Below, piece by piece: positions 2,152 through 31,289 of a stretch of 64,000 nucleotides of DNA (its first letter is position 1; each line of letters begins with the position of its first letter). Made by a program: the position numbers and the translations under genes. Location of the stretch: the sequence record ON568341.1. The stretch is one strand, 5' to 3'. Under the pieces are notes generated by a model, which saw nothing but the letters and a program-made list of their open reading frames with translations, did not search any database and was not told the DNA's origin.

Positions 2152-3849
<1,698 letters not shown>

Positions 3850-3889: not shown

Positions 3890-4041
3890 GTTACAATATT
3901 TATGAAATAGATTAAAAATTTGAAATGTGTTCAAAAATATTATAATAAATTTATAAAAAAAAATAAATGATTTTTTTTGAAACGGTTCAAAAAAATGTGG
4001 TATAATATATATGTTGTTCACGGAAAGATTAAGCGGGGATG

Positions 4042-6864: not shown

Positions 6865-7290
6865 ATGAAATACAACATCGTTGAAATGGTGAACTATGTA
6901 TTAAAAAACAACGCATGGTCACTGCATGATGTACAATTAGAAGATATTGGTGAAGTTAGAGTATTTTGCTATGATCCAGAGTTGAATCAAACCACAGATT
7001 TGAGTAAATGTTTTAATATTTTTCTTGGTTATGAATTCAATAATCATTTTTATTCATTTGATGTGTATTTTGAAAAAGTTATATTCAGAAGTTATGAATG
7101 TGATAATGAAGATTATGATTATGATGACGAATCAATTGAATTGAATGTTAACGACATTGATACTGAAGAAAAATTCTTCCAGTACTGCCTCGTTAACAAC
7201 ACATTAGGATTGTCATTTAAGGACATTGAATCTATACTTAAAGTTCAAAAGTTGATTCCAGAAGAGGTACTAAATCCATTAAATGACTAG
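6865..7290 (+). CDS. hypothetical protein, EExxFQxS-motif family
   Basis: DTEEKFFQYCLVNN. Confidence 0.85.
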   Translation: MKYNIVEMVNYVLKNNAWSLHDVQLEDIGEVRVFCYDPELNQTTDLSKCFNIFLGYEFNNHFYSFDVYFEKVIFRSYECDNEDYDYDDESIELNVNDIDTEEKFFQYCLVNNTLGLSFKDIESILKVQKLIPEEVLNPLND

Positions 7291-7648
7291 TCTAATAGTA
7301 CGTATAATGCAAGATGTTTGTAATAACCTTTATACAGGTAATTTTGACGATCCGAACATAAAAATATTATGTTATGATGGTTTTACAATGGTACATCCAG
7401 CCTATTCAAATAATATCTACGTAGCATATACAGGTGAAAATCTATTGTATCAATTTGATATATATAGTACAATGACAAAGATAATTTTGGATGCATCTAA
7501 ACCAGCAATTATTATTGCTTCTCATGATTATCATTACACTGAAGAATCACTATTTCAGTACTCAATGATTAATGACATTGGTGGGTTGACATTGGATGAG
7601 GTTAATGCTATACTAGCTGTCTCACGTTTGGTTAAAACTCACAATTAG
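7283..7648 (+). CDS. hypothetical protein, EExxFQxS-motif family
   Basis: YTEESLFQYSMIND. Confidence 0.85.
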   Translation: MTSLIVRIMQDVCNNLYTGNFDDPNIKILCYDGFTMVHPAYSNNIYVAYTGENLLYQFDIYSTMTKIILDASKPAIIIASHDYHYTEESLFQYSMINDIGGLTLDEVNAILAVSRLVKTHN

Positions 7649-7657
7649 GAGATTCAT

Positions 7658-7849
7658 ATGTTCTGGAATTTATTATGCTTGTTTGGTCGCACATTAGTTC
7701 TTGCAATTATTCATACACCTGGCATTCGTAATTATGTTTCTTATGAATTTAAGAAAGATTATCACAACGGTACTGAAGCACGTGCTACTAAAATGTGCAA
7801 AGACTTCAATGTATCAGTACCACCATTTAAGAAATACGAGGATGAATAA
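7658..7849 (+). CDS. hypothetical protein
   Basis: SD AGGAG; hydrophobic N-terminus. Confidence 0.75.
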   Translation: MFWNLLCLFGRTLVLAIIHTPGIRNYVSYEFKKDYHNGTEARATKMCKDFNVSVPPFKKYEDE

Positions 7850-8133
7850 TGGAATTCATTGTTGCCCCTGATGATATTAAAACATTTACGTTCAGAGATA
7901 ATAATAATTATCCTTATACAAATCATTCATTGAATTCATTACATGTTATTTCAATCATTGCATCTGAATACAGAGAAAATCCCTGTATTGATTTTAAAAC
8001 CACTGATGGTGAATATACATGGGTAATCCCAAAAGATAAATATAGTTATCAAGGGGCAGTAGAAATTCGCGACTTGATTCTAAAACAAATCGAAGATGGA
8101 AATACTCATCCTAAACTAAACACTCAGTACTGA
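7849..8133 (+). CDS. hypothetical protein
   Basis: Overlapping stop-start. Confidence 0.8.
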   Translation: MEFIVAPDDIKTFTFRDNNNYPYTNHSLNSLHVISIIASEYRENPCIDFKTTDGEYTWVIPKDKYSYQGAVEIRDLILKQIEDGNTHPKLNTQY

Positions 8134-8358
8134 AAATGTTCCCTCTGATAGCTTTTAATCAGTACTGATTTTCTCCTTATGTGTAGAAGCTATCACCATT
8201 ACAATGATATTATTATCAATTCATTATATTCTTTACCCTCCTAACAGTATCTAGATAAATTTATATTAGATACTGTGATTTTAGAAGTTGCATTTTAACT
8301 TCTTTCCTGTTATACTTAAGGCTGATTCATGTTCGAATCGGCCTTTTTTCTTATATAG

Positions 8359-17732: not shown

Positions 17733-18686
17733 TTGAAAAAACTAGATTTGAATGCAATTGCAGATGAAGTACTGGACGAATGTTTTTCTAATGAAGAAGT
17801 CAATACACTTGATGCATTAGATTCAGTACAAGATGAAGATAAAGTTCAAAGTAATTTCAAGTTTAATATTAGTCTTAAGCGTCCACATAATGTAACAAAT
17901 GAAGATCTAATCCGTGATATTCAAGCTGGTATCAATGTTAAGAAAAACACTGAACTATTAGTTCGTTATAATTATGGACTAATTGTTGATGTTGCAAGTA
18001 AATGCACGTGTTATATCCCATTTGAAGATAAGATATCATATGGTATTGAGGGATTCATGCGAGCACTAAAAACATTTGATCTTAGTAAGAATGTTAAGTT
18101 CGTTACATACGCATCTTCCAGCATTTATATGACAGTATACAATGAAAGTTCAGATGCCAATCATCTGGTACATTTTCCACGCTATATGAGTGTTAATAAG
18201 ATACAAGTTAAACGCTTTTGTCATGAATATGAGCGTAAGCACGGTTGTCGTCCAACACCTGAACTAATTTCAGAGGGGACGGGAATTGAAATTCAACATG
18301 TAAAGAATTGTTTGTTATTCCAAAGTGAATATACTGCATTGGATGCACCATTGGATGGTGTTTCGGATGGTACGTTAAGTGATATTCTTCATACATCTGA
18401 TTGCGATTACAATCTTAATGTTGATAGTATTCGTGCACCTTTGCGTTATGTCATTAATGATCTAACACATGAATTGAGTACGAAAGAACGTGAAATTATC
18501 CAGCGTGTTCATGGTTTAGGTGAATTTAATCCTGAATCACTTCGTGAAATTGCTGATAGTGGTTTTGTTGATGACAATGGCAAATGTGTTAAATCAAGAT
18601 CATCTGTACACCGTAAATATAGTGAAGCTATAAAAAAACTTAAGAAATTAGTACTTGAAAAAGGGTACGAATACGAAGATTTCTAA
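17733..18686 (+). CDS. phage sigma70-family RNA polymerase sigma factor
   Basis: Region 2 (NYGLIVDVASK, GIEGFMRALKTFD..KFVTYA), region 3 (PTPELISEGTG, ALD), region 4 (LSTKEREII..SLREIA..SRSSVHRK..AIKKLK); TTG start, SD AGGAG. Confidence 0.9.
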   Translation: MKKLDLNAIADEVLDECFSNEEVNTLDALDSVQDEDKVQSNFKFNISLKRPHNVTNEDLIRDIQAGINVKKNTELLVRYNYGLIVDVASKCTCYIPFEDKISYGIEGFMRALKTFDLSKNVKFVTYASSSIYMTVYNESSDANHLVHFPRYMSVNKIQVKRFCHEYERKHGCRPTPELISEGTGIEIQHVKNCLLFQSEYTALDAPLDGVSDGTLSDILHTSDCDYNLNVDSIRAPLRYVINDLTHELSTKEREIIQRVHGLGEFNPESLREIADSGFVDDNGKCVKSRSSVHRKYSEAIKKLKKLVLEKGYEYEDF

Positions 18687-18691
18687 AGAAC

Positions 18692-18720
18692 AAGGGTTGA
18701 CTTAGGTCAACCCTTTTTTT
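18692..18720 (+). terminator. GGTTGAC-GTCARCC family terminator
   Basis: AGGGTTGAC-TTAG-GTCAACCCT plus T7. Confidence 0.85.
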
Positions 18721-18721
18721 A

Positions 18722-18750
18722 TGGGACAAATTATAAAGTTATGATATACT
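18722..18750 (+). promoter_or_regulatory. TGGGACA-type promoter of large ncRNA
   Basis: GGGACA 18723-28, 16 bp ending TGA, TATACT 18745-50. Confidence 0.7.
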
Positions 18751-18756
18751 TATTAT

Positions 18757-19225
18757 GTACAATCCTGTTGAATGCAGAAATGCATATAAATGAGAACCTG
18801 ATCCTATCGAAAATGTAGATGGCAGATGAGCAGTTCAACAGTGCGATGAGCAGAAGAAACCCGTCAGATGTGGGCATAGTTTGAACCCCTCACGGCAATG
18901 CGGCTCAATAAAGAACCATGTTAGGATAGCTGATGGTTCCTTGATAGACATATAAGGATAACACCTTACGAATTATCTAAGGGAGAGTACTCAAATTTTG
19001 TACAAGAAAGTTGCGTCCAAAATTTGAGTACTCACATTAAGTATTTGATTGCATAGATACTTAATGAAGATACACTATGTTTAAAAGTGTAGACCGTCAT
19101 ATGAAACTGAAGTAGAGAGAAACAGGATGACCCGCTTTCGCACTCGTTATGAGTAATCTTCAATGCAATAGCTCTGATACCATCAGCGTCAAATTTCCCT
19201 CCGCAGTGGGGGGAAGAAAAATCAC
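18757..19225 (+). ncRNA. candidate approx 470-nt multi-stem non-coding RNA
   Basis: No ORF of 60 aa or more; perfect 16-bp stem 18985-19000/19018-19033; 13-bp stem 19035-47/19054-66; long-range GCTGATGGT 18929-37 with ACCATCAGC 19179-87; CTGTTGAA/TTCAACAG; GAAA tetraloop. Confidence 0.75.
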
Positions 19226-19348
19226 CTCCTCAAATCCCGTCAATATTAAAAGTCCTTGACAGTTATTAATCATTCGCGTAGAATACGTAGTATTAGAAGC
19301 GAACAGACATCTCGAAGAGATGGATGATTAACTATTGAGGAATTTCCA

Positions 19349-19558
19349 ATGAATTCAGTAATCTTTTTAGTAGTCGCTCTTTCAATTCAATCCGGTGTAC
19401 AAATTACCCCAATGAACTCAATGAACCAATGTTTTTCAGTACGTGACAGTACTTATGAACAAGTAAACCACATGTCACTTATGACAGTTAGTAAAGAAAG
19501 TATGTGGTGTTACAATAGTAATACTAACACAAAGCTTATTGTAGGACAAAATCAATGA
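19349..19558 (+). CDS. small exported two-Cys protein
   Basis: Signal-like N-terminus; own promoter TTGACA-17-TAGAAT at 19256. Confidence 0.75.
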   Translation: MNSVIFLVVALSIQSGVQITPMNSMNQCFSVRDSTYEQVNHMSLMTVSKESMWCYNSNTNTKLIVGQNQ

Positions 19559-19786: not shown

Positions 19787-20575
19787 ATGAGCACTATAGA
19801 TGAACTGATTCGACGGAATTCAAAATACTACAAACCATCAGAAATTGTAGGTAACATTACCAAATCAGAGTTTGGTCCAAATACTCGAAAACTAATTCAT
19901 GTAATGTCACGTGATGGCTTTAAATGTGATTGTTGTGGTGAATCCAATGTGGTATTCACTTTGCATAAGCACAGTACTAAAGACCGTTATAAATTCAGAC
20001 CTTATGTACTTAAAGGGAAACGCCTTGTACGCATGACGTTAGACCATAATGTACTGGACTGTCTTCAGGGTGGTAATGATAAAGAGAACATGACTGCATT
20101 ATGTGAAGATTGTAACGCATTACGCCAACATAAGTTTGCTGAGTACAGTGAGTTTAAACACTGGTATCATAATGCGGAACGTTCAATCGAGCCGGACGTT
20201 AACTACTGCTTCATTGAGTACATTAAGAATGCTAAAGATACATATATTCTTAAATCTATGGAACCAATTACCGTGTTTCCAATGAACCTATTCACTACAT
20301 TAAAGAATAGTTTTATGGTAGGTGATATTGATGCATTCAAGTATTTTGACAAAGGTGCAAAACATTTTGAAGTTCAATGTCTTAGTACTGCACTATGTGA
20401 ACTTATTAAAATTTACATAAAAGATTATTTGGGTATTGACAATGTACGCGTACCAGAGTATACTTTTTCTATTGATTTCGATTGTGAATCAATCAAAGAG
20501 TTTGGGATTCTTTTCAATAAACAAATAGAACTTGCAATTCAAAACGAAATCAAGTACTATAATACTAACATTTAA
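19787..20575 (+). CDS. HNH endonuclease with CxxC zinc ligands
   Basis: CDCCG..MTLDH..GGNDKENMTALCEDCN. Confidence 0.85.
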   Translation: MSTIDELIRRNSKYYKPSEIVGNITKSEFGPNTRKLIHVMSRDGFKCDCCGESNVVFTLHKHSTKDRYKFRPYVLKGKRLVRMTLDHNVLDCLQGGNDKENMTALCEDCNALRQHKFAEYSEFKHWYHNAERSIEPDVNYCFIEYIKNAKDTYILKSMEPITVFPMNLFTTLKNSFMVGDIDAFKYFDKGAKHFEVQCLSTALCELIKIYIKDYLGIDNVRVPEYTFSIDFDCESIKEFGILFNKQIELAIQNEIKYYNTNI

Positions 20576-29459: not shown

Positions 29460-29488
29460 TGGGACAAACTTTTCTATAATGATATAAT
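29460..29488 (+). promoter_or_regulatory. TGGGACA-type promoter
   Basis: GGGACA 29461-66, 16 bp ending TGA, TATAAT 29483-88. Confidence 0.7.
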
Positions 29489-30038: not shown

Positions 30039-31289
30039 ATGCCAAGTAATTTTACTGATAAAAATGGTGGTAACATGGCAGGTCACTCGGATAAATGGAG
30101 TGAACGCAACCGCCGACCAAATAGTTACCAAGCAGGTCAAGGTTCTCGTGGCTCCAGAAACCAAGGAACTGGTCTAGCTGGTAAAGCAAATGCTGAACCT
30201 GGTGAAGTTAAAAGTACTGAGAACATGACTGAGCTAGAAAAACTACGCTACGTTAATTCATTGGGACTTCTTAATGCTACACAAAAACAACGTCTAGCTG
30301 ATATGGAACGTGAAGAAAAAGAAAAGACTGCTCCTGCGAAAGAAGAACCAAAACAAGAAGCACCAAAGGCGGTTAACCCTGTCAAAGAACTGTCTGATAA
30401 GTTAGGTAAGATCTTTGCAAATAAACCCCAACTTATTCAAGGTATTGTCAAAGAATTGCAATCTGTACCTAAAGAAGAATTAAAAGCCAAAGCACAAGCT
30501 GTTCTGGATGCAATGAAAGGAAATACCAGTACTGAACCAACCGAAGTATTCAGTACTATTATGCGTGCACTGGAAGGTAAACAACAAGGTGAAGAACGTG
30601 GTGATGAAGTAAGTCTTGAACGTGTTCTTAAAACATTTGATAGTATTGGGAAAGAAGACCGTGTTAATGCACAACAGGTTAAAAATGTACTAGCAAAATT
30701 GGAAAACCGTCTAGAAGGTAAAGATGATAAGATTAAATTGGTATCCGATGCAGTTGAAAATGCACTTAAATCTTATGTACAAGGTGAAAAGAGTCGTTTT
30801 GTAACTGCTATGGATGCTGCATTCAATACTATGAAAAAGTACGAAGCGGATCATGGAGAGAAGGTAACACGAGATGGTTATTTAATGCGTGATGATGAAG
30901 AAGGTGCAGTGGAACAGAATGATGCTCATTCTGACGAAGATATTGATGACATGGAAGCAGAACTGTCACAGGACCGCCAAATGACTGAAAAATCTCACAA
31001 TGAACTACAGAAATTAATGCAGTGGGTTGCAGAAGTAGGTGAAAAGGCTGGTGAAGATAAGAAGAGTATCAACCGAAACCTAAGTTGGATTAAAGATAAG
31101 GTTGGTAATAACGCTCGTAAACTACAAAAAGCATGGACTGATGTAGTGAATGGTGCGGTAGATATTGATGTTGAGTCTGGTGAAGCATATGATTATGCAT
31201 TGACTACACTTGATGATTCTTTTCGTGACTACGAAAAAGGAAACGTTACTCCTTGGGAAAAGGACATAATGAGTAAATATGGTAAATGA
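30039..31289 (+). CDS. late charged helical protein; possible internal head protein
   Basis: SD GGAG before ATG 30039; the TTG start at 29961 lies inside the terminator. Confidence 0.85.
   Translation: MPSNFTDKNGGNMAGHSDKWSERNRRPNSYQAGQGSRGSRNQGTGLAGKANAEPGEVKSTENMTELEKLRYVNSLGLLNATQKQRLADMEREEKEKTAPAKEEPKQEAPKAVNPVKELSDKLGKIFANKPQLIQGIVKELQSVPKEELKAKAQAVLDAMKGNTSTEPTEVFSTIMRALEGKQQGEERGDEVSLERVLKTFDSIGKEDRVNAQQVKNVLAKLENRLEGKDDKIKLVSDAVENALKSYVQGEKSRFVTAMDAAFNTMKKYEADHGEKVTRDGYLMRDDEEGAVEQNDAHSDEDIDDMEAELSQDRQMTEKSHNELQKLMQWVAEVGEKAGEDKKSINRNLSWIKDKVGNNARKLQKAWTDVVNGAVDIDVESGEAYDYALTTLDDSFRDYEKGNVTPWEKDIMSKYGK

Follow-up and report, generated by a model that had tools for sequence, protein, structure and literature searches.

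A window of 64,000 nucleotides (nt) from the genome of Escherichia phage UE-S1 (Asteriusvirus, 358 kb; ON568341.1; record coordinate = window coordinate + 62,000) carries a conserved, structured non-coding block of about 490 nt at positions 18757-19244 on the + strand, as delimited using an nhmmer profile and a conserved 3' end. Over 611 bases at this site, the sequence shows 100% identity to the UE-S1 record. This block almost certainly represents a real, structured and novel RNA family. The fuller proposition, in which it encodes a stable trans-acting non-coding RNA (ncRNA) of a new family that acts as the core of a ribonucleoprotein (RNP) or as a decoy in conflict, is in our judgment evenly balanced when identity and mechanism are taken jointly. 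The RNA family was found only in Rak2-like jumbo phages and in one family of islands of Escherichia coli. An initial annotation, which was made from the sequence alone, had proposed a new large RNA class at this locus. That proposal stood, in that Rfam 15 gave no match, covariation was strong and the RNA occupies a stand-alone gene.

Searches of Rfam 15 returned no match for the window and 13 homologous loci at the gathering score, nor for positions 18600-19400 at E ≤ 10; only tRNAs and chance hits far under threshold were obtained, and no known family was matched. The initial annotation had been unable to assign the RNA to tmRNA, RNase P RNA, 6S RNA or group I introns, in agreement with the absence of an Rfam match to any of them at E ≤ 10 around the locus. 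Further, ARAGORN detected seven tRNAs but no tmRNA in the window, and tmRNA and RNase P RNA were rejected accordingly. We also rejected 6S RNA, because the consensus is multi-helix and pseudoknotted, and a group I intron, because a terminator and promoters, and not the halves of a split open reading frame (ORF), border the element. The HEARO model gave no Rfam hit, and the variable parts of the RNA (hairpins P0 and P7, and loop L7) pair internally instead of providing a free guide. The GOLLD and ROOL models gave no hit in the window or the 13 homologous loci. There was no hit to the phi29-type pRNA model either, and the RNA studied here is about 490 nt long, multi-copy and found in jumbo myoviruses. 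A search of the literature, including the genome papers of UE-S1 and fEgEco12, found no description of such an RNA. The ncRNA002 of phage PA5oct was examined as a homologue and rejected, since nhmmer with all filters off detected no sequence similarity.

Homologues, the collection of which the initial annotation had proposed, were obtained from 62-70 phage records. For the analysis of covariation, about 55 nhmmer hits were reduced to 23 representatives that were less than 95% identical. RNAalifold predicted 60 pairs from these representatives, of which 39 showed at least one compensatory double change, the opposite of the uncompensated stems that would speak against a structured RNA. Three pseudoknots were added by a separate helix search on the alignment. 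The 13 helices P1-P10, PK-a, PK-b and PK-c were 91-100% canonical. When the 3' partner was moved by 1-3 columns as a control, 11 of the 12 varying helices were 13-68% canonical, whereas the 3-bp PK-d reached up to 99% at one shift; P6 is invariant and thus without covariation, so that its shifted controls were uninformative. As a null model, the column order was permuted while column composition and phylogeny were retained (30 trials). The observed alignment contained 11 covarying helices, whereas the permutations averaged 0.33 and never exceeded 2. About 100 alignment columns were invariant, many of them in loops or junctions. Comparison of the copies strongly supports a model of two pseudoknotted domains with at least 16 helices and a covarying loop-loop kissing contact.

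The four pseudoknots, all on the + strand as are the helices described below, are supported by the alignment, three of them strongly. PK-a is a 4-bp kissing contact between L5 (18924-27) and L6 (18975-78). It was 96% canonical, compared with 13-38% in its shifted controls, and at least seven different complementary loop pairs occurred in the family. PK-b comprises 7 bp between the P7 loop (19048-54) and a 3' strand (19163-69); it was 99% canonical with double changes at six of the seven pairs (shifted controls, 20-45%). PK-c, in which an upstream strand (19096-100) pairs with the P9 loop (19127-31) over 5 bp, was 100% canonical with three covarying pairs. PK-d is a 3-bp tertiary pairing of AUG (18898-900) with CAU (18949-51), for which the c3 copies and TH47_c have ACA/UGU, a joint change of both sides; this evidence is weak, as it comes from one representative among the 23. 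Covariation does not distinguish intramolecular pairing from pairing within a homo-oligomer.

The 5' part of the RNA begins with the peripheral hairpin P0 (18772-18785), which has a GAAA loop (18777-80) and a stem that differs in sequence and length between copies; this segment forms a hairpin in most of 22 representatives, with differing stem sequences. The hairpin P1 (18803-18822) bears the near-invariant loop GAAAAUGUA, and its five pairs were 99% canonical, each of them with double changes. The junction of the 5' domain (18830-18907) is built from P2 (18830-32/18842-44), P3 (18847-51/18903-07) and P4 (18861-64/18892-95), all of which were 100% canonical, with double changes in two P2 pairs and three P3 pairs. 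The conserved strands of this junction are GCARAAGAAACCCGU and CACGGCAAUGCGGCU. The P5 hairpin (18913-18/18934-39) showed double changes at all six pairs. It is followed by the P6 hairpin (18964-67/18979-82), in which CCUU/AAGG is invariant.

Between P6 and P7 lies an optional hairpin module (18984-19034) with a perfect 16-bp A/U-rich stem (18984-99/19019-34) and a conserved 17-nt loop, UACAAGAAAGUUGCGUC, which is kept across genera. The module was found only once in the 64-kb window; it is missing from copy c2 and occurs twice in c3 and in some metagenomic copies. The P7 hairpin (19035-44/19057-66) showed double changes at all ten pairs, and the hairpin P7.1 (19071-76/19086-91) is formed in nearly all copies with differing stems. 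The core of the 3' domain (19096-19162) consists of P8 (19108-12/19158-62), P9 (19115-19/19135-39), P10 (19142-45/19151-54) and PK-c. Double changes were found in all five P8 pairs and all three P10 pairs, P9 was 100% canonical, and the core contains the invariant strings GACCGU, AGAAAC and AACCCGCUU. The terminal hairpin P11 (19174-19186; CUGAU/AUCAG in UE-S1), which leads into the first of two YCGUCAR motifs, is present in nearly all copies, with shifts in register and sequence. The 3' extension (19194-19244) comprises a G+C-rich hairpin (19194-19216) and a tail (19226-19244) that ends in the second YCGUCAR; it follows the representative copies examined downstream as well as the E. coli copy. 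The G+C hairpin motif occurred once in the 64-kb window, where none was expected by chance. In some copies, a terminator-like hairpin and U-run are inserted before the G+C hairpin. We found no supported helix between the 3' tail and the core.

The perfect 16-bp stem and the GAAA tetraloop of the initial annotation are both present as described above, and its 13-bp stem is P7 with wobble pairs included (19035-47/19054-66). It had placed the RNA at about 18757-19225. The start was retained, and the end was moved about 20 nt downstream, to about 19244, because the G+C hairpin and the tail are conserved. A switch had also been proposed, in which a long-range helix (18929-37/19179-87) would compete with a local hairpin GAACCAT/ATGGTTC. 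Both the 9-bp complementarity and the local hairpin exist in the sequence. However, all nine long-range pairs were formed only in two orthologues of c1, the copy in the window, and the helix was 54% canonical over the 23 members, inside the 13-68% range of the shifted controls, while the local P5 covaries at six of six pairs. The proposed switch thus finds no evolutionary support. Several further resemblances were noticed by eye, namely hammerhead-like and group-I-like strings and an anti-Shine-Dalgarno look-alike in P6, as was a possible helix between the loop of the optional module and the strand immediately 5' to P6; these were rejected because the required invariant or covarying positions were not kept in the alignment.

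The element does not encode a protein. Its longest + strand ORF is 24 amino acids (aa), and the ORFs that overlap it on either strand are short (36-48 aa). Across copies, the longest + strand ORF ranged from 22 to 53 aa, at positions that were not common to the copies, and alignment indels were not multiples of three. A protein-coding gene was therefore ruled out, there being no conserved ORF, in line with the initial annotation, which had seen none. The minimum free energy was -128.5 kcal/mol, corresponding to z = -3.2 for the + strand relative to dinucleotide-preserving shuffles. The reverse strand gave z = -4.2 by the same procedure, and energy alone therefore cannot tell the strand. In the helix cells of the 23-representative alignment, G.U combinations numbered 51 and A.C combinations 4, which identifies the + strand as the folded RNA. 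The UE-S1 record annotates part of the element only as "repeat_region". In Klebsiella phage K64-1 (locus positions 518-1260), the annotation places the tiny "hypothetical protein" ORFs gp305-gp308 on both strands over the RNA gene, and several Asteriusvirus records likewise annotate small "hypothetical proteins" across it; these small ORFs are very probably spurious.

Upstream of the RNA lies a sigma-70-family gene (17733-18686, + strand; identified by Pfam), in which Sigma70 regions 2 and 3 scored above the Pfam cut-offs and region 4 under its cut-off. An intrinsic terminator with a 10-bp stem and a T-run (18692-18715, + strand) ends this gene and insulates the RNA gene against transcription from upstream. 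The promoter of the RNA gene (18723-18750, + strand) consists of GGGACA at the -35 position (18723-28), a 16-nt spacer and the extended -10 element TG-n-TATACT (18742-50); transcription is predicted to start near 18755-18757. The next promoter, a near-consensus TTGACA-17-TAGAAT (19256-19284, + strand), lies 12 nt beyond the RNA tail. Thus the sigma-gene terminator, the TGGGACA-type promoter and the following TTGACA promoter on which the initial annotation had relied were all located. GRRAC or TGRRAC about 14-17 nt before TG-n-TATA(A/C)T was found in most of the 23 representative copies and also in the E. coli copy, and several of the representatives have an extra leader hairpin at the 5' end. 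That every copy forms its own small gene, or transcription unit, is strongly supported by these comparisons. The extended -10 promoters of the copies are expected to function with the host sigma-70 RNA polymerase, and the conserved GRRAC at the -35 position may mark a phage-specific promoter class. The same type of promoter (GRRAC, about 16 nt, TG-n-TATAAT) occurs at 444-471, 3979-4006 and 29461-29488 in the window; the first lies ahead of a tRNA-Ser (at 482) and the other two ahead of protein-coding operons. Promoters of this class serve UE-S1 generally and are not specific to the RNA.

BLAST against phage genomes gave matches to the element in 62 Rak2-like jumbo-phage records, mostly in 3-5 places each, and more diverged queries detected it in 64-70 records. 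The hosts of these phages are Escherichia, Salmonella, Erwinia, Yersinia, Serratia, Cronobacter, Pectobacterium, Xanthomonas and Klebsiella. Two un-annotated Asteriusvirus genomes were scanned whole with the profile, and each contained four full-length copies: TH47, and ECO103 4-12-1, in which the copies lie at about 18.5, 128.6, 208.4 and 261.9 kb on one strand. The copies are dispersed, diverged and co-oriented with their neighbours. No further copy was found inside the 64-kb window, the paralogues being elsewhere in the genome. The nhmmer profile confirmed about 55 hits; its match in UE-S1 spans 18759-19192, and a more diverged full-length copy was detected in phage K64-1 (Alcyoneusvirus; 85.8 bits). 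Pattern scans of IMG/VR and metagenomes showed that uncultivated contigs of about 350-370 kb also carry copies. A scan of bacteria and archaea, with one genome per species and the exact pattern only, returned six stretches and no true homologue. Within the family, the 5' halves of c1 and c2 were 91% identical (18759-18985 of the window and 30595-30822 of the c2 locus in ECO103) and the 3' halves about 70%, which suggests gene conversion or recombination between c1 and c2.

Among 5,426 complete E. coli genomes, two, LR-29-1 (NZ_AP027515.1) and EEC_W5, contained an intact copy (298.5 bits, E = 2e-91). This copy occupies positions 6960-7545 of the island locus of LR-29-1, and is the same in EEC_W5. 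It retains the promoter, the terminator-like hairpin, the G+C hairpin and the tail, and sits in the cargo slot of an integrase-bearing island at ffs. The proteins of the island include DuOB, DUF488, mSLOG-DUF4326 and DUF2188; PADLOC candidates among them are PDC-M45 (DuOB and DUF488) and PDC-S16 (DUF2188). The surrounding region matched in part in 91 E. coli genomes. In the related island of SBF45, the same slot holds a type III restriction subunit, and a related element (NZ_LT883142.1) has a helicase-family gene upstream of the shared block. Of the whole island, only the RNA module of about 550 bp matched phages, the best match being to one Eneladusvirus paralogue (80.6%), and in the tree the island copy grouped with a paralogue from a Yersinia phage, at moderate support (93/92). 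The RNA gene has therefore been transferred as a self-contained unit to a cargo site of variable content in this island, which also bears the candidate defence genes.

Just upstream of the restriction subunit, the SBF45 island (locus 3020-3170) contains a promoter-like box and a 3' end that resembles the terminator, hairpin and tail of the RNA gene, with no core. This stretch looks like a decayed remnant of the RNA gene, a hint that the gene and the island family were already associated earlier. A 303-aa protein encoded upstream of the island copy was considered as a partner and rejected, because an 81%-identical homologue occurs in an island without the RNA; it is a backbone gene. In the LR-29-1 locus, about 700 nt of non-coding sequence with ATCGATCG-rich repeats (7550-8258) lie upstream of a conserved 257-aa island gene. 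Related islands share this stretch at about 82% identity, and it may serve as a replication or regulatory region of the element.

The genes beside the phage copies were also compared. In Asteriusvirus, the sigma gene precedes one of the four copies, and the other three come after an SbcC-like gene, a DUF7325 gene and, near a Dam methylase, a gene without assigned function. A conserved neighbouring protein was sought and none was found, as the genes downstream of different copies were unrelated and the flanking families differed. In ECO103, the GC skew tracks gene orientation and does not change sign in the 5-kb bins that hold the four copies, the nearest sign change being about 6 kb from copy 2. 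A replication origin or primer transcript of the T4 or ColE1 type was rejected accordingly, since no copy lies at a switch of strand composition in this genome; independently of this, the strand-specific covariation, rich in G.U, indicates a folded RNA. In phage 121Q, c2 is flanked on each side by about 550-650 nt without a + strand ORF of 60 aa or more (locus 1077-1722 and 2225-2781), and there could be further non-coding elements beside it. At a distance from the RNA gene, positions 2071-2145 of the window were called by ARAGORN as a tRNA with a four-base anticodon (tcat) and no assigned amino acid, and by Rfam as a regular tRNA; the anticodon loop may be 8 nt long, or a CAT tRNA may have been misread.

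As to function, the presence of several strongly promoted copies, together with hairpins that protect the ends, points to a requirement for large amounts of the RNA. The intricacy of its core would fit an RNP core, a ribozyme or an RNA assembly, and its capture by the island points to involvement in conflict, be it with the host or with other phages. The reading that we favour, tentatively, is that the RNA serves as an abundant trans-acting scaffold or decoy, which would bind a protein encoded elsewhere during conflict between phage and host or between phages. If so, large amounts would be required early in infection, and the RNA would act stoichiometrically, either by folding into the core of an RNA-protein complex or by serving as a decoy for that protein. 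The complex or decoy would form part of the conflict, and the island copy might compete with, or substitute for, the phage's own copies.

Several observations weigh against this reading. We identified no partner protein. Known sponges such as CsrB and 6S RNA have a simple architecture, and an intricate pseudoknotted core with many invariant junction nucleotides is more typical of ribozymes and RNA-only assemblies. The copy in the island occurs in few genomes (2 of 5,426) and could be a neutral hitch-hiker, and related islands carry only an apparently decayed remnant of the RNA gene. Further, c1 is without a canonical terminator after its tail, so that read-through into the next operon is possible, and the transcript ends of the RNA gene are predictions from sequence.

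A protein partner might not be required at all. It is possible, though doubtful, that the RNA is an autonomous, protein-independent conflict module, that is, an RNA-only exclusion or defence element or a decoy; the jumbo phages would maintain 3-5 diversified copies of it, and the island would have taken it up into the slot that holds a restriction gene in related islands. A new large ribozyme, whose pseudoknotted core would be catalytic on RNA, on another substrate or on itself, seems to us unlikely. The size of the RNA, its four pseudoknots and its roughly 100 invariant positions are marks of known large ribozymes, and the YCGUCAR motifs at the 3' end, which change in parallel in one lineage (L096), might be processing sites. 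However, no Rfam ribozyme model resembles the RNA, the hammerhead-like AGAUGAG is without the invariant positions of that core across the family, the many strongly promoted copies point to a stoichiometric and not a catalytic need, and no candidate substrate was identified. We consider it distinctly unlikely that the RNA forms an RNA-only or RNA-dominated homo-oligomer like ROOL, GOLLD or phi29 pRNA, in which PK-a and perhaps PK-b would be intermolecular and join the molecules into rings or cages. PK-a, as a 4-bp loop-loop pairing with at least seven complementary variants, would suit such an assembly, covariation is compatible with intermolecular pairs, high dosage suits a structural role, and ROOL and GOLLD form homo-oligomeric complexes (PMC12286853). 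However, the Rfam models of ROOL, GOLLD and pRNA did not match, and the loops are near enough in the secondary structure for intramolecular pairing.

The initial annotation, which placed the RNA directly downstream of the sigma gene, had proposed that it perhaps binds RNA polymerase or sigma, and an RNA like 6S or Ms1 could sequester the host holoenzyme or modulate the phage sigma factor. One copy directly follows the sigma gene in UE-S1, 121Q, ECO103 and K64-1, is about 700 nt away from it in TH47, and lies 3-4 kb after it in Serratia phage BF and an XbC2-like contig, a synteny that reaches deeper than expected; multiple copies with strong promoters would also suit titration of an abundant target. 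However, the remaining 2-4 copies of each genome are found at other sites and adjoin the SbcC-like gene, DUF7325 and the Dam methylase. The link to sigma comes from conserved synteny, which could reflect a shared gene order of the phage genomes. Given also that the fold is multi-domain and pseudoknotted, instead of a rod with a promoter-like bubble, and that no 6S hit was obtained, we regard this explanation as improbable. A cis-acting leader, attenuator or riboswitch for the operon downstream of each copy is highly improbable: c1 is indeed without a canonical terminator after its tail and some copies contain terminator-like hairpins and U-runs inside the unit, but the downstream genes differ at every copy, a near-consensus promoter restarts transcription 12 nt after the c1 tail, the module moved alone into the E. 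coli island, and about 490 nt with 16 helices is far above the size of known cis-regulators. The initial annotation had offered, as a weaker alternative, a HEARO/OMEGA-like guide RNA for an HNH protein encoded about 560 nt downstream, and an HNH-like ORF of 262 aa does lie there (19787-20575). We rejected this alternative, which we find scarcely credible. The ORF had no Pfam hit and no RuvC domain; it is present in UE-S1, 121Q and TH47 and absent from ECO103, which retains the RNA, and the gene downstream of the Serratia phage BF copy is not homologous to it. None of the ORFs flanking the other three copies of 121Q gave an HNH or RuvC hit, no HEARO model matched, and the variable segments of the RNA are engaged in internal pairs. 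The 262-aa ORF behaves like a mobile homing endonuclease, and fragments with HNH resemblance turn up at many loci.

Large structured RNAs without an assigned function are rare, and OLE, GOLLD, ROOL and raiA each opened new biochemistry. The multiple copies within one genome are unusual for RNAs of such complexity, and the covariation is strong even with 23 sequences. The RNA occurs in cultivable E. coli phages (121Q, PBECO4, UE-S1, phAPEC6, and Sharanji on K-12), which makes genetics and biochemistry feasible. Further, the copy near candidate defence genes in the island provides a testable conflict hypothesis, which most orphan large RNAs lack. If the conflict module were also catalytic or self-assembling, it would represent a new class of ribozyme or RNA nanostructure with a first functional handle.

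Among known systems, GOLLD and ROOL, which are often phage-borne, are similar to the present RNA in several respects: length above 400 nt, an intricate and highly conserved fold, a stand-alone gene with no fixed protein partner, and occurrence in phages. In contrast to them, the RNA described here is mostly present as 3-5 diverged copies per genome in Rak2-like jumbo phages of Gram-negative hosts, and it is not beside tRNA genes, the nearest being about 12 kb away. In phi29 pRNA, two loops of four complementary bases covary among relatives, and PK-a likewise consists of two 4-base covarying loops; this resemblance concerns one feature, besides the fact that both RNAs are phage-encoded and have their own promoter. 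pRNA is about 120-174 nt long and single-copy, and belongs to small podoviruses with protein-primed genomes; we know of no RNA requirement for packaging in Rak2-like myoviruses. ROOL and GOLLD assemble into homo-oligomeric cages, as determined by cryo-electron microscopy (PMC12286853), and the covarying loop-loop contact of the present RNA could in principle form between molecules as well.

With the abundant trans-acting RNAs 6S and Ms1, the present RNA shares a copy that is syntenic with a sigma-factor gene. However, 6S, at about 180 nt, forms a rod that opens into a central bubble, whereas the RNA of UE-S1 is about 490 nt long with two pseudoknotted domains. The OLE and raiA motif RNAs, which are chromosomal, single-copy and found in Gram-positive bacteria, are comparable in complexity and nucleotide conservation, but Rfam indicated no homology to them. 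OLE is the core of an RNA-protein complex, the mode that we favour for the RNA studied here. The ncRNA002 of phage PA5oct is likewise ORF-less and similar in length, and comes from a jumbo phage related to the Rak2 group; it is 451 nt long and accounts for 1-5% of phage reads in RNA-seq (PMC7318152). The high expression of ncRNA002 shows that such phages make abundant large ncRNAs.

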